From the NCBI RefSeq assembly GCF_006345805.1, contig NC_043013.1:18600001-18664000 (forward strand): a stretch of 64,000 nucleotides of DNA, given 5' to 3'. The translations under genes were made by a program, and so were the position numbers. The stretch's first letter is position 1. Every line of letters starts with the position of its first letter. Below the pieces are notes generated by a model. The model searched no databases. It was not told where the DNA came from and saw nothing but the letters and a program-made list of their open reading frames with translations. This DNA comes from Octopus sinensis. Lineage: Eukaryota. Of this stretch, positions 9,341 to 18,996 are shown in pieces.

Positions 9341-9441
9341 CTAAATTCTTCGTTCAAGTGAATAAATATTTAACTGGAACCATTTTTGAAGCTCTCCGCA
9401 AATACTAACACACTTTAACGAGTTCTCTCCATTAGTTCTGT
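9341..9441 (-). CDS. Candidate coding exon, paralog 1 of 3: (x)RTNGENSLKCVSICGELQKWFQLNIYSLERRI*
   Basis: Acceptor TTTTTCGTAG, phase 1, only open frame, ends TAG. Differences from the paralogs in the 27-codon core are all synonymous. Confidence 0.5.
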
Positions 9442-9821
9442 CTACGAAAAAGCGAGAATTTCGCATTCAAATAAATGAATAAAATAAGATAAAAATAAAG
9501 ATAATGTATAATAAAAAAAAACAAAAAAACCCTACATTCTTCAGGACAAGACCCACACTCAGAGACACACAGCATGTTTCCACAGTTAAAGTTCCAGTTC
9601 TTTATAACGTCTCTCTTTCTGTTCCACCTCTCTCTCTCTCTCGAAGTTTTATTCTGTTGTCATTCTCTGAATATTTGTGTGTGTATCAATATGTCATATA
9701 CGCACTCGCACGCGTACATACACACGCATACATACACACACACAACATACGCATACATACATTCATATACACGTGTATGTATGTGTGTATGTGTGTGTAC
9801 GCGCGCGCATACATGAAGGTG

Positions 9822-9950
9822 TGCGGTCGAGTGGTCCAGTGACTAGGATGTTGCAATCGTGATCGTAAGCTCCTGATTTCGATTCACGGGCCGGGCGGTG
9901 CGTTATGCTCTTCAGCAAAGCACTTCATTTCTCGTTAGTGTGCATCTACC
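9822..9950 (+). mobile_element. tRNA-head SINE fragment
   Basis: GTGGTCCAGTGACTAGGATG...TTTCGATTCACGGGCCGGGCGGTGCGTT...AGCAAAGCACTTCATTTC. Confidence 0.65.
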
Positions 9951-10724
9951 TGTAACAGGTGTCACTCGAAGAGGCAACGAGCTAGTCTGGTGCACAGACT
10001 AGTAGTATTTGTGATAATCATTTTTGGACTTAACAAAAATAAAATAACTTTAAACATTTTCTTTCATATATTTTTTTTACATCCAAACATTAGGAACGTC
10101 TCCCAAGAGAGACGTAGGGGAGGGCACGGGCCCTTTCAGGTTGTAGACATAGTACAATGAGATTTCTTTCTTTGAGTTCTTTCTGAATACTATCAAACAT
10201 AAGCAGACCAGCGGAGTGAAAGGAAGTTGGACCACAATATCTATCTATCTATCTATCTATCTATCTATCTATCTATCTATCTATCTATCTATCTATCTAT
10301 CTATCTGTCTGTCTGTCTGTCTGTCTGTCTATCTATCTATCTATCTATCTATCTATCTATCTATCTATCTATCTATCTATCTATCTATCTATCTGTCTGT
10401 CTATGTATCTATCTATTACACTTTACATCATGAGATTTCTGTGATACACGATCCCTATTGATCGTTTTTTTTCCTTTTTTCTTTCCTTCTTTTTCTATTT
10501 TTCTTTTTCTTTTTTTTCCTTCCCTTTTAACGATCCCTTTTGATCGAAAACCTAACCCACATTTTATTTTCTCCCCACAAAAAGAAGCTCTACTTTGTAA
10601 TCTGTCCCGTCTGTGTGCAGCCCTGCGTGGCTAATAAAGAAACATATCTATCTATATATCTATAGATATGCATGTATATGTATATATTTACAAAACTCCT
10701 GATGCTAATCACAATATGGTTTCA

Positions 10725-11400
10725 AATTTTGGCACGAAGCCAGCAAGTTCGTGGTAAGGGTTAAGTCGATTACATCGATCCCCAACTGGTACTTATTTTA
10801 TCGACTTACAGAGGATAAAAAGGCAAAGTCGACTTCGGCGGAATTTTGACTCAGAACGTAAAGGCGGACGAAATGCCCCTAAGCATTTTGTCCGGTTTCC
10901 TAACGATTCTGTCAACTCACGTCTTAATTTTGGTCACAATATAAAAGTTAAATTATTGTGATACTTATATATAGTTTAAAGATAAGGCGGCGAGCTGGCA
11001 GACACGCTAGCGCGCCTGGCGAAATTCTGAGCAGTATTTCGTCAGTCGTTACGTTCTGAGTTCAAATTCCGCCGAAGTCGACTTTGCTTTTCATCCTTTC
11101 GGGGTCGATTAAATAAGTACCAGTTACGCACTGGAGTCGATATAATCGACTTAATCCGTTTGTCTGTCCTTGTTTGTCCTCTCCGTGTCTAGACCCTTGT
11201 GGGTAGTAAGGAAATAGGTATTTCGTCTGTCGTTACGTTCTGAGTTCAAATTCCGCCGAGGTCGACTTTGCCTTTCATCCTTTCGGGGTCGATAAATTAA
11301 GTACCAATTTTACACTGGGGTCGATGTAATCGACTTAATCCGTTTGTCTGTCCTTGTTTGTCCTCTCCGTGTTTAGACCCTTGTGGGCAATAAAGAAATA
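10725..11400. mobile_element. SINE cluster: one minus copy (10725-10925) head-to-head with a plus-strand tandem dimer (10982-11215, 11216-11400)
   Basis: Same family as 7635-7856. The second plus copy is 5'-truncated and directly appended. Confidence 0.85.
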
Positions 11401-13526
11401 TGTATATAGTTTAAAGAAAAAACAGTGTTCAGTGGTAATGGAAGTATTCAAAGAGTAAAAATATTCAATAGCAACAGAATTTTGAAATTACTTTGGTTGG
11501 CTAATCATTTGTATCTTCGAAATTAAATTAAGCTTCAGTAATTATGAATTTTTAGAAAACATAACTAACTACTAATATTTCTTTTCTTCCCTATTTTTTA
11601 ATAAAGAACTTTTTGTTTTGCATATATTATCACTAGTTATTGTAATGATTTTTGAAAATGTTTTCTTAAATGTCTGCGAAATAAATGATGACTTGTGTCG
11701 GTAAAAACCAGTCTGAATAAAGTTCAGAACATTCATTTCTCCTCACATTGAACGAGAGTTTAGTACGTGGTCTACTTGTAAGGAACTAAGCAAATGTCAA
11801 ATTAAAAAAAACCCAATTAAAATGGACCTACTAAAAATAAAAACAAAATCATAGACATACTAACGATGATAACGATACTTGAATGATTAAAACATATTAT
11901 TAATTAACTACGTTATTGTTTTTATTGATGGCATGTAAATTATTTTCTTCTTAACAATCACACGATGAACTTGACTGCAAGTCGAAACGACGTTCATTTT
12001 GTGCTCTGTAAATATAGAGGTAAGGTTATTTAACAGCAAGAAAATAAACGGTAAGAATACATGCGACAAAAATTGTTACTGCAAAAGTAAATTAATACGG
12101 CAAATTTACCTGTAGCAAAAATGTTTACAGTAAATACCTGCCTCGAAAGTTAATAACCAGTTTTCGTGAAAAACACTTCATATGAAGCTGCTACAGGCCA
12201 GCCTTTCTTGATACAGTATTACTAGAAAGGGAATAACTCCCTTCTGGGGAAGATGCAAAGGTTAAGAGAAAATAGGAGCATGAGCCTAACATTGTATTAC
12301 TTTCTGTCTCACTCTCGTAAATACAAGCTAAGACATAAAAAAACAATTGCGGTATAGTGACTGAAATTAAAACACAGTGGAGCAGTATCGGTTGTTTCAT
12401 CGCTTTTACTCTCTAACTTGGCTAATACTGATGCAATCAGCACTTGTTAGCATGATTAAGGCCAAGCTGTAGACCATGGTTTTCATACAGAAATATAAAT
12501 AATTCTCTTTTATTTTTGCCGGTACTTCTGATGGGATATTTTGTATTCGTCTCTCTCGCCTATCAATTTACACAACATAATAAATGATACAATACATTTA
12601 TTAATTTTATGTATTAATTTCCCCACCCATGTACCTCACTAGATGTAGGTGTGCAAATTTTAACACACTGATAAGAATACACCTTGAGTTATCTTTTATT
12701 ATTTCATTCTTCAGAAAATCACTCCCAGCCAAAAACTTCGCACGTTCCAACCTGTATAGTCAGTTAGTCTTACAAGTGCAATATATTGCTATACAGGAAA
12801 ACAAGTTAATTGTGGGAACTGAATAAAATATAAAGCTGGAGCGACAATAAAAAGACAATAAAAACAACGATAATTTTGAATTAAATTTGGCGTTGGACAT
12901 TTTATAAATGTCGCAATTACTAAAACATAAAATAACAGGAAATTGTTCAGTAGACACACACCATAACAATACGTACTGAAGTGACATTACTCTCTCTCTC
13001 TCATTCTGTTTGTTGAACGCCCTCTCTTTCTTTCTCTCTCTCTGTGCATATACATATACATATATATTTGTATTATATATGCATTGTATTATATTATATT
13101 ATATTATATTATGTAATATCATATGATACACACACACACACACACACATATATACATATACATATATATGGGAAAAAGAACAGAAATGAATTTTTCGTTA
13201 ATTTTTCCATTTTCACGATTATTTACGTTTTTATTATTTTTTTGCAATTTACTTAATCATCGGTATATTATTGTTATTTTATATATAATATTTCTATTAT
13301 ATGTAATTTTCTAGATGGTGTAATTTAATTGTTCATTTTGAATGATAAAAGGTGTTTTTTCTAATTATATATATATATATATATTATATATTATATATAT
13401 ATATATATTATATATATATATGTATGTATGTATATTCCAGTTCTATATTCAAGAGATGGAGAATTATGTAAATTATTTACATTAGTTACATTTTGACGGA
13501 TATTTGTCCTTATCTTGTTTGTTGTT

Positions 13527-17847: not shown

Positions 17848-18235
17848 AAGATGGCAATCTAGCAGAATGTTTTATCACACCGGCCGGACAAAAGGCTTTC
17901 TGGCATTTCGTCCCGTCTTTACGTTCTGAATTCAAATTCCGCCGAGGCCGACTTCGCTTTTCATCCTTTCGGGGTCGATGAAAATAAGATAAAGTACCAA
18001 TCAAGTTCTAAAGTCCATGTAATCAAGCAACCCTTCATCTTTCCCAAAATTTCAAGCCTTGTCCCTATACAACAAAGTATTATTGTTATTATTATTCGAG
18101 TGTCTTTACGTTCTGAGTTCAAATTCCAACTTTGCCTTTAATCATATCGGGATCGATAAAATAAAACCAATTGATCACTAAGGGCAATGTAATCGACTAG
18201 CCCCCACTTCCTCGACCTCCACAAATTCAGCTCCT
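17848..18235 (+). mobile_element. Two partial SINE copies (7635 family)
   Basis: TTACGTTCTGAATTCAAATTCCGCCGAGG...TTTCATCCTTTCGGGGTCGATG, then a second TTACGTTCTGAGTTCAAATTCC copy at about 18105. Confidence 0.75.
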
Positions 18236-18340
18236 TGTGCTTATAATAGAATTATTTTCATTGACATTTTCGTTCTCGTTTTGTTTTTGTTATGGGGTTC
18301 TTATTATTGCTATTAATTTTATCATTATTTTTATTGTTCG

Positions 18341-18720
18341 TGGAGGCGCAATGGCCCAGTTGTTAGGGCAGCGGATTCGCGGTCATAGGATCGCGGTTTC
18401 GATTCCCAGACCGGGCCTTGTGAGTGTTTATTGAGCGAAAACACTTAAAAGCTCCACGAGGCTCCGGCAGGGGATGGTGGTGATCCCTGCTGTACTCTTT
18501 CACCACAACTTTCTCTCACTCTTACTTCCTGTTTCTGATGTACCTGTATTTCAAGGGGCCGGCCTTGTCACTCTCTGTGTCACGCTGAATATCCCCGAGA
18601 ACTACGTTAAGGGTGCACGTGTCTGTGGAGTGCTCAGCCACTTACACGTTAATTTCACGAGCAGGCTGTTCCGTTGATTCGGATCAACCGGAAACCTCGT
18701 CGTCGTAACCGACGGAGTGC
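18341..18720 (+). mobile_element. Near full-length tRNA-head SINE
   Basis: GGAGGCGCAATGGCCCAGTTGTTAGGG A-box, GTTTCGATTCCC B-box, 3' end homologous to 335-645. Confidence 0.85.
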
Positions 18721-18895
18721 TTTCATTCCATTTTTATTGTTGTTATTTTTGTTGGCATTATTATAAATATCATTATTATAATAATCATCATAGTTATTAT
18801 TATTATTATTGTTGCAGTTGTTGTTGTTTTGTTGTTGTTTCGCTGTTGTCATTTTTGTTCTCGGTTAGCAATGCCGACATCATTGTTAATACAAT

Positions 18896-18996
18896 CTAAA
18901 TTCTTCGTTCAAGTGAATAAATATTTAACTGGAACCATTTTTGAAGCTCTCCACAAATACTAACACACTTTAACGAATTCATTCCATTATTACAGT
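18896..18996 (-). CDS. Candidate coding exon, paralog 3 of 3: (x)CNNGMNSLKCVSICGELQKWFQLNIYSLERRI*
   Basis: Strong acceptor CTCTCTCTTCTAGCAG, phase 1, ends TAG. AATAAA on the minus strand about 160 nt downstream (18732-18737). Confidence 0.5.

Follow-up and report, generated by a model that had tools for sequence, protein, structure and literature searches.

Three short paralogous segments on the minus strand of an Octopus sinensis contig: possible duplicates of one terminal coding exon

In this paper we looked at a window of 64,000 nucleotides (nt) of Octopus sinensis DNA (contig NC_043013.1, positions 18,600,001 to 18,664,000), in which three related segments of 101 nt, labeled here c1, c2 and c3, lie on the minus strand. 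We suggest, with a probability of a little under one half (about 0.45), that these segments may be local duplicates of one short 3'-terminal coding exon that is under selection, a reading that comes from the sequence alone. The three copies themselves are real and well beyond chance; a 22-mer from their core has three exact matches in the window against 0.01 expected from shuffled sequence. With position 1 as the start of the exon, the segments are:

c1, 9341..9441, minus strand: 101-nt unit with a phase-1 start behind TCGTAG; its frame encodes xRTNGE-NSLKCVSICGELQKWFQLNIYSLERRI and terminates at TAG.
c2, 14677..14777, minus strand: 101-nt unit in the same frame; TTG instead of the stop leads into a (GTG)n tract, and a G-to-C change weakens the base of the hairpin described below.
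c3, 18896..18996, minus strand: 101-nt unit nearest to the consensus; it has a start behind TAGCAG (a NAGNAG-type acceptor), a TAG end and AATAAA at +157.

A first-pass annotation of this DNA had reported three segments of 101 nt on one strand, about 5.3 and 4.2 kb apart, and our analysis recovered the same length, coordinates, strand and spacing (5336 and 4219 nt between successive copies). It had also counted five variable sites in a core of 27 codons; we found these again at exon positions 20, 23, 35, 44 and 56 (AAC/AAT, TCG/TCC, GTT/GTC, TGC/TGT and CAA/CAG), all of them third codon positions and all synonymous. The amino acid changes (R/C, T/D/N and E/M) are indeed limited to codons 1–5 and the acceptor phase is 1 in all three copies. 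In the middle copy TTG replaces TAG, as had been described, and the frame reads through for ~120 codons into a Val-rich tract encoded by (GTG)n, giving a 208-amino-acid (aa) open reading frame (ORF) at 14320-14946. No fourth copy was detected in the window by blastn, by an nhmmer profile or by tblastn with the peptide. A weak nhmmer match to the unit profile (62809-62920, minus strand, E = 1.1) lies before GAT-rich sequence and a run of (CAC)n; it was rejected as a further copy, as on reading its sequence does not look homologous.

The pattern of differences in the core is best seen in its codon phase. Only one of the six reading frames is free of stops, across the core as well as across the whole 101 nt, and it is the frame of the first-pass annotation. 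In this frame the 27-codon core shows no nonsynonymous and five synonymous differences, whilst the near flanks are variable at 27–65% of their columns. It was found in 200,000 simulations, with the core taken as positions 17–99 (a boundary that was chosen after seeing the data), that five random substitutions would all be synonymous in the open frame with a probability of 0.0002–0.0009, depending on transition bias, and would all share one codon phase with a probability of 0.0095. Once the post hoc choice of the boundary is allowed for, the all-synonymous pattern has a probability of roughly 0.01. Third positions in the core vary about as often (5 of 27) as the columns of the 3' flank (7 of 26), which fits synonymous sites that are free to change and a peptide that is fully constrained. 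Purifying selection on a coding frame, as proposed in the first-pass annotation, is supported by these patterns at roughly the 0.001–0.01 level. The same annotation had offered, as an alternative, a 32-nt micro-exon that ends at a GT(T/C)AGT donor. This is unlikely, since the codon-phase signal continues past the donor (the synonymous sites 35, 44 and 56 lie beyond it) and the +3 position of the donor is a pyrimidine. A small ORF with its own start codon was also rejected, as the in-frame ATG of c2 and c3 is GAG in c1.

At the homologous position all three copies have YAG, with AC as the first two exon bases. The earlier description of a pyrimidine-rich AG held for the AG itself and for the tracts of c1 and c3, where the 20 nt before the AG rank in the top 6% and the top 3%, respectively, among all minus-strand AG sites, but not for c2, whose tract just before the AG is ordinary (42nd percentile). 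Over 100 nt, the upstream sequence is pyrimidine-rich in all three copies, and these stretches do not align with each other as a whole:

upstream tract of c1, 9442..9541, minus strand: T-rich, 66% pyrimidine (top 4% of windows), with weak homology to c2 and c3 over the nearest ~45 nt.
upstream tract of c2, 14778..14877, minus strand: CT-rich, 69% pyrimidine (top 2%), with a block TTGTAGGATTTCATTGGTCAAT at -45..-24 in common with c3 (21 of 22 positions).
upstream tract of c3, 18997..19096, minus strand: T-rich, 62% pyrimidine (top 9%), which holds the -45..-24 block shared with c2.

Downstream, AATAAA is found at +157 in c3 and at +991 in c2.

The homology between the copies exceeds the 101 nt and extends from about -45 to +125, where a trinucleotide microsatellite follows in each copy. 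The aligned blocks are 14821-14659 with 19034-18878 for c2 and c3, and 9447-9317 with 14783-14653 for c1 and c2. Pairwise identity is 0.49–0.65 at exon positions -45..-1, 0.69–0.81 at 1..16, 0.94–0.98 in the 83-nt core (17..99), 0.65–0.88 at 100..125 and 0.29–0.46 at 126..160. The three copies align without a single indel from -6 to +125, and indels are present further upstream. The 3' flanks are:

3' flank of c1, 9039..9340, minus strand: ~25 nt conserved, then a GAT/TAA (minus-strand) trinucleotide microsatellite; the array covers 9039-9333.
3' flank of c2, 14402..14676, minus strand: ~25 nt conserved, then a (GTG/GGT)n microsatellite; the array covers 14402-14604.
3' flank of c3, 18756..18895, minus strand: ~25 nt conserved, then an (AAC/AAT)n microsatellite; the array covers 18756-18849.

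Apart from the units, the sequence shared between copies is limited to microsatellites and repeats that resemble short interspersed nuclear elements (SINE-like). No further collinear homologous block was found by blastn or tblastx within the 5.3-kb and 4.2-kb units, in agreement with the first-pass annotation, which saw no other homologous exon between the copies. As the identity is confined to a short tract and nothing else is shared in the units, the 101-nt unit is an island shaped by strong constraint or by homogenisation and not a recent segmental duplication.

A layout that fits this arrangement is a set of tandem last exons. The source transcript would be unannotated and lineage-restricted, and each copy would be entered through its phase-1 YAG acceptor behind a pyrimidine-rich tract. 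Each would add ~33 residues, of which the last 27 (NSLKCVSICGELQKWFQLNIYSLERRI) would be kept by purifying selection whilst the surrounding DNA diverged beyond recognition. The last exons would be spliced to common exons beyond the window and would give the same C-terminus with different 3' untranslated regions (UTRs). We infer that the three copies may be spliced and translated and may share one upstream gene. Since nothing else is duplicated in the 4–5 kb units, tandem duplicated last exons are the simplest layout, and alternative last exons are the most economical one if the segments are coding; tandem paralogous genes were rejected, as the units share nothing else. With its stop gone and the weakest proximal acceptor of the three, c2 may be decaying. 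In known cases of tandem alternative last exons, as here, the exons share strand, acceptor phase and length, the duplication leaves out the rest of the unit, purifying selection acts on the peptide and the downstream sequence (here the would-be 3' UTR) differs from copy to copy. The present segments differ from such cases in that one copy is stopless, the peptide is without known relatives and a search of the same strand over the next 44 kb gave no upstream exon; their peptides are also practically identical, so that only the 3' UTRs would set the copies apart.

In order to find relatives of the peptide or of a host gene, several protein collections were searched. A 47-aa query gave no candidate in a word-indexed library of 5.8 billion clustered proteins, in which candidates must share three 5-residue words with the query and which includes Octopus bimaculoides RefSeq proteins. 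A 33-aa query against 1.84 billion representatives (HMMER) gave three matches, all from one family of giant, fibre-like repeat proteins with the motif GINSLSATSITGELQTAAQPNITS. Their scores sum weak repeated matches and are therefore regarded as noise, and these proteins were rejected as homologues (with P0003 as the target, BLASTP of the peptide yields E = 14). No genuine homologue of the peptide was thus found in either library, although in such searches a cluster could conceal an isoform that is distinct solely in the last 33 residues. Pfam finds nothing in the peptides of the copies, and the peptide family is as unrecognised as the first-pass annotation had found it. On the minus strand from 19 to 63 kb, where upstream exons might lie, none of the non-repetitive ORFs has a Pfam domain, and the same ORFs joined into one query of 4958 aa matched no protein at E <= 0.001; any shared upstream exons would thus be tiny, unknown or outside the window. 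Exact look-ups of three ORFs of the window found none on record. In collections that are unlikely to hold the source organism there were also no matches: scans of metagenome contigs with an exact 30-mer and with a back-translated pattern of 42 nt returned zero, and so did a scan of bacterial and archaeal genomes with a degenerate pattern. The proposal of the first-pass annotation that the copies are mutually exclusive last exons of one gene stands only in part. The selection on the coding frame agrees with it, but the common gene is unsupported, given that no homologous or Pfam-matching ORF lies upstream on the minus strand between 19 and 63 kb, c2 is stopless and AATAAA is near c3 only.

The missing relatives and upstream ORFs weigh against a coding exon, and so do several features of the copies themselves. 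When the start of the core is moved to position 8, five of seven differences are synonymous (p ~0.013), and for the whole exon the count of five of 12 is not significant. The five differences are crowded into the first 40 nt of the core, whose last 43 nt have no changes (chance 0.022). The c1 copy has neither AATAAA nor ATTAAA within 1.5 kb downstream. The stop is TAG in c1 and c3 and is lost in c2, yet c2 is conserved as well as the others. Finally, the conserved core is itself a hairpin that resembles a microRNA precursor (pre-miRNA), a feature that is absent from the first-pass annotation. In our view a large factor in favor of a coding exon comes from the one frame that is open, the codon phase of the differences and the setting of the acceptors, and a somewhat smaller factor in the opposite direction comes from the hairpin, the invariant 3' half, the loss of the stop in c2 and the lack of a protein relative.

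One possible alternative is that the segments are three paralogous microRNA-like, or otherwise structured, small-RNA precursors on the minus strand, with the 3' arm (~AGUUAAAUAUUUAUUCACUUGAACGA) as the mature product and with an open frame that is coincidental. We consider it unlikely, although such a cluster may be regarded as a serious rival to the coding exon. The minus-strand core is predicted to fold into a hairpin of 72–76 nt with a 5' arm UCGUUAAAGUGUGUUAGUAUUUG and a 3' arm UAAAUAUUUAUUCACUUGAACGA, a size that fits a pre-miRNA. Of the arm positions 20 of 23 are paired, where at least 16 pairs are looked for in a ~22-nt duplex, and the hairpin has ~30 pairs in total, including a short apical stem and a 4-bp basal extension. 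The stability of the three predicted hairpins, with z-scores computed on a hand-picked 76-nt window, is as follows:

hairpin core of c1, 9347..9422, minus strand: 23-nt arms, folding free energy (dG) -20.7 kcal/mol, z -3.3.
hairpin core of c2, 14683..14758, minus strand: weakened, dG -15.5 kcal/mol, z -1.3.
hairpin core of c3, 18902..18977, minus strand: arms at ~18955-18977 and ~18904-18930, dG -21.3 kcal/mol, z -4.35, minimal folding free energy index (MFEI) 0.89.

The c2 fold is weak because a G-to-C change at position 23 breaks a basal pair. Owing to three G-U pairs the fold is also strand-specific: the minus strand reaches -21 kcal/mol and the plus strand -12. The hairpin coincides with the conserved core: the 3' arm and the bases that follow it are invariant over the 43 nt mentioned above, all five changes fall in the 5' arm or the loop, and four of the five are at unpaired or already mismatched positions. 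Counted by hairpin part, there are no changes in the 3' arm, two in the 5' arm and two in the apical region (internal and terminal loops). The change of the stop codon in c2 lies outside the hairpin, and both the spacing of a few kb on one strand and the lack of a protein homologue suit a non-coding cluster. Paralogous microRNA precursors in a cluster, with a 3p mature product, would be expected to show such a picture.

The codon phase stands against small-RNA precursors, as an all-synonymous pattern in the sole open frame would arise with a chance of ~0.001–0.01 if the frame were coincidental. The substitutions keep the hairpin no better than chance (the probability of one or fewer disruptive changes is 0.18–0.37), compensatory pairs are absent, and three of the pairs are lost in at least one copy. 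Of the non-repetitive 76-nt windows of the same region, 3–4% fold as well and 1.4% do so as a single hairpin, and the surrounding 141 nt do not exceed shuffled sequence in stability. No Rfam family matches the element in scans by gathering threshold or by E-value, and the arm sequences were not found in the searchable literature. The arm sequences are absent from the accessible supplements of an octopus microRNA paper, which lack precursor sequences, and most candidate seed sites are absent too; two candidate-seed k-mers do occur in these supplements and are listed there as non-seed. That paper reports 94 novel Octopus vulgaris genes in 90 families, so that trios of paralogues seem to be rare, at least in Octopus vulgaris.

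Compared with clustered animal microRNA precursors, the likeness lies in three hairpins as large as pre-miRNAs that follow each other on one strand at intervals of a few kb, in 23-nt arms with 20 pairs and one invariant arm, and in a conservation that drops within tens of nt of the hairpin. The difference is that there is no Rfam family and no compensatory change, that the hairpins are predicted from the sequence, and that the loop is as conserved as the 5' arm and the differences track the codon phase, which a microRNA does not predict. Other small RNAs were also considered for the element. A snoRNA (small nucleolar RNA) was rejected, as there is no Rfam match above noise (the best, snoZ155, has E = 8 and is on the opposite strand) and, for the C/D boxes, the sole UGAUGA is 3' of the core and the core has no CUGA. 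A tRNA identity was rejected as well. Elsewhere in the window, 19147-19200 and 4600-4670 have sub-threshold Rfam matches of the mir-297/mir-466 type (31.9–41 bits against gathering thresholds of 85–90); these were rejected as microRNA genes, since they lie on (TG/TA)n microsatellites and are repeat artefacts.

Another hypothesis, which is a weaker rival than the microRNA-like hairpin and which we hold to be improbable, is that the segments are three 5'-truncated 3' ends of a non-LTR (long terminal repeat) retrotransposon of RTE-like or CR1-like type. Each would consist of the last 30–45 codons, a stop, a short 3' UTR and a simple-repeat tail, and the synonymous differences would reflect selection on active master copies and not on these loci. 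RTE-clade elements have short 3' UTRs that are dominated by AT-rich short repeats. The anatomy of all three copies fits, with a stop or TTG, then 8–73 nt and then a trinucleotide array. Before the AG, c2 and c3 keep the frame open; a 6-nt indel there leaves the frame intact, and CRISLVN shows a single synonymous difference. In c1, by contrast, a stop in the frame and indels that shift it lie immediately before the AG. Other repeats (mariner, SINE-like) fill the window, and an endonuclease-like remnant of a long interspersed nuclear element (LINE) lies on the same strand at 21694-21867, 2.7 kb upstream of c3; however, three-frame translation and Pfam reveal no reverse-transcriptase (RT) remnant between this fragment and c3.

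The distribution of the copies also argues against retrotransposon ends. The 64 kb hold no more than three copies, which share one strand and are confined to 9.7 kb, with none in the other 54 kb; c2 and c3 have an identical 5' boundary, which is not expected from independent truncation. The identity along the unit is uneven (0.5, then 0.96, then 0.3), unlike the neutral decay of inserted copies, and no predicted protein in the large libraries ends in the peptide, though ORFs of transposable elements are abundant there. The units resemble RTE/CR1-type 3' ends in having an ORF end, a short UTR, a simple-repeat tail and a stem-loop near the 3' end. They differ from them in being clustered and co-oriented, in the common 5' boundary of two copies, in their non-uniform divergence, in having no RT domain attached and in a hairpin that lies inside the ORF and not in the UTR. 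The LINE remnant itself is of the apurinic-type endonuclease and is degraded to ~21200 (minus strand); it reads …LGSWNVRGC…DVLALSETK…, followed by …VVLGDLNARVG… in another frame.

A further option combines two of the explanations above: a tandemly triplicated terminal exon whose coding sequence is also selected as a stable RNA hairpin, which might serve as a microRNA-like precursor within the exon or as double-stranded RNA for editing. Such a double role would account for all the observations together, among them the restriction of the differences to synonymous changes and the complete invariance of the 3' arm even at its synonymous sites. We give it only a slim chance, which overlaps with the weights of the coding exon and of the hairpin and is not additive to them. 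Part of the weight is assigned to none of the explanations. The least probable of them is that the copies are functionless remnants of an old local duplication, kept similar by gene conversion and with an accidental frame and hairpin: the copies form a mosaic (c2 matches c3 through the 5' flank and the initial 16 nt but matches c1 in the 3' flank), which suggests exchange between copies, but conversion needs flanking homology, which these islands do not have, and leaves unexplained both the synonymous-only differences and the retained pyrimidine-rich tracts of unrelated sequence.

The window around the copies is AT-rich (~33% GC), is saturated with microsatellites and contains mariner-like and SINE-like repeats. 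Remnants of mariner/Tc1-type transposases with frame breaks are found at 15835-16437 (minus strand) and 63014-63598 (both strands), and some of their relatives carry DDE_3 (PF13358). The best relatives of the piece at 15835-16137 are 43–59% identical and include an uncharacterised Octopus bimaculoides protein and an insect transposase. A further piece that resembles the mariner C-terminal lies at 44132-44314 (plus strand). The SINE-like family has a length of ~190–220 nt, an identity of 70–91% and members in both orientations, and ARAGORN finds no tRNA-like head in it. Its copies are:

7633-7855: SINE-like copy.
10993-11408: two tandem SINE-like copies.
17883-18198: SINE-like copy.
59916-60203: SINE-like copy.
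35682-35792: SINE-like copy.
49371-49442: SINE-like copy.

Two other repeats are located near the copies. A 215-nt inverted repeat (13465-13679 and 13890-14104), with arms that are 85% complementary and 210 nt apart, encloses an (ATT)n/(GAT)n microsatellite ~570 nt downstream of c2 and may be a foldback element or one similar to a miniature inverted-repeat transposable element (MITE-like). Just downstream of the microsatellite tail of c1 there is a strand-skewed, low-complexity CT/GA-rich block (8283-8900), with a GC skew of -0.44 over 8–10 kb, which leads to spurious long ORFs in either orientation. At 4957-5101 (plus strand) an isolated sequence resembles 5.8S rRNA over the full length of the model (Rfam RF00002, 86.7 bits). 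There is no match to 18S or 28S anywhere in the 64-kb window, and the 5.8S-like sequence is probably a pseudogene derived from ribosomal DNA or an orphan fragment.

The two leading explanations would have different meanings for the octopus genome. If the microRNA-like hairpins were real, they would form a new microRNA family of three members in animals where new paralogous microRNA families seem to be rare. With only three copies, the statistics of the codon phase and of the hairpin point in different ways, which makes this locus a useful test case. If the favored explanation of a duplicated last coding exon is true, the segments would reveal an unannotated, lineage-restricted peptide whose last exon was triplicated and kept. 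They would then be a small and clean case of exon duplication that makes alternative 3' ends, and would mark a gap in the annotation.

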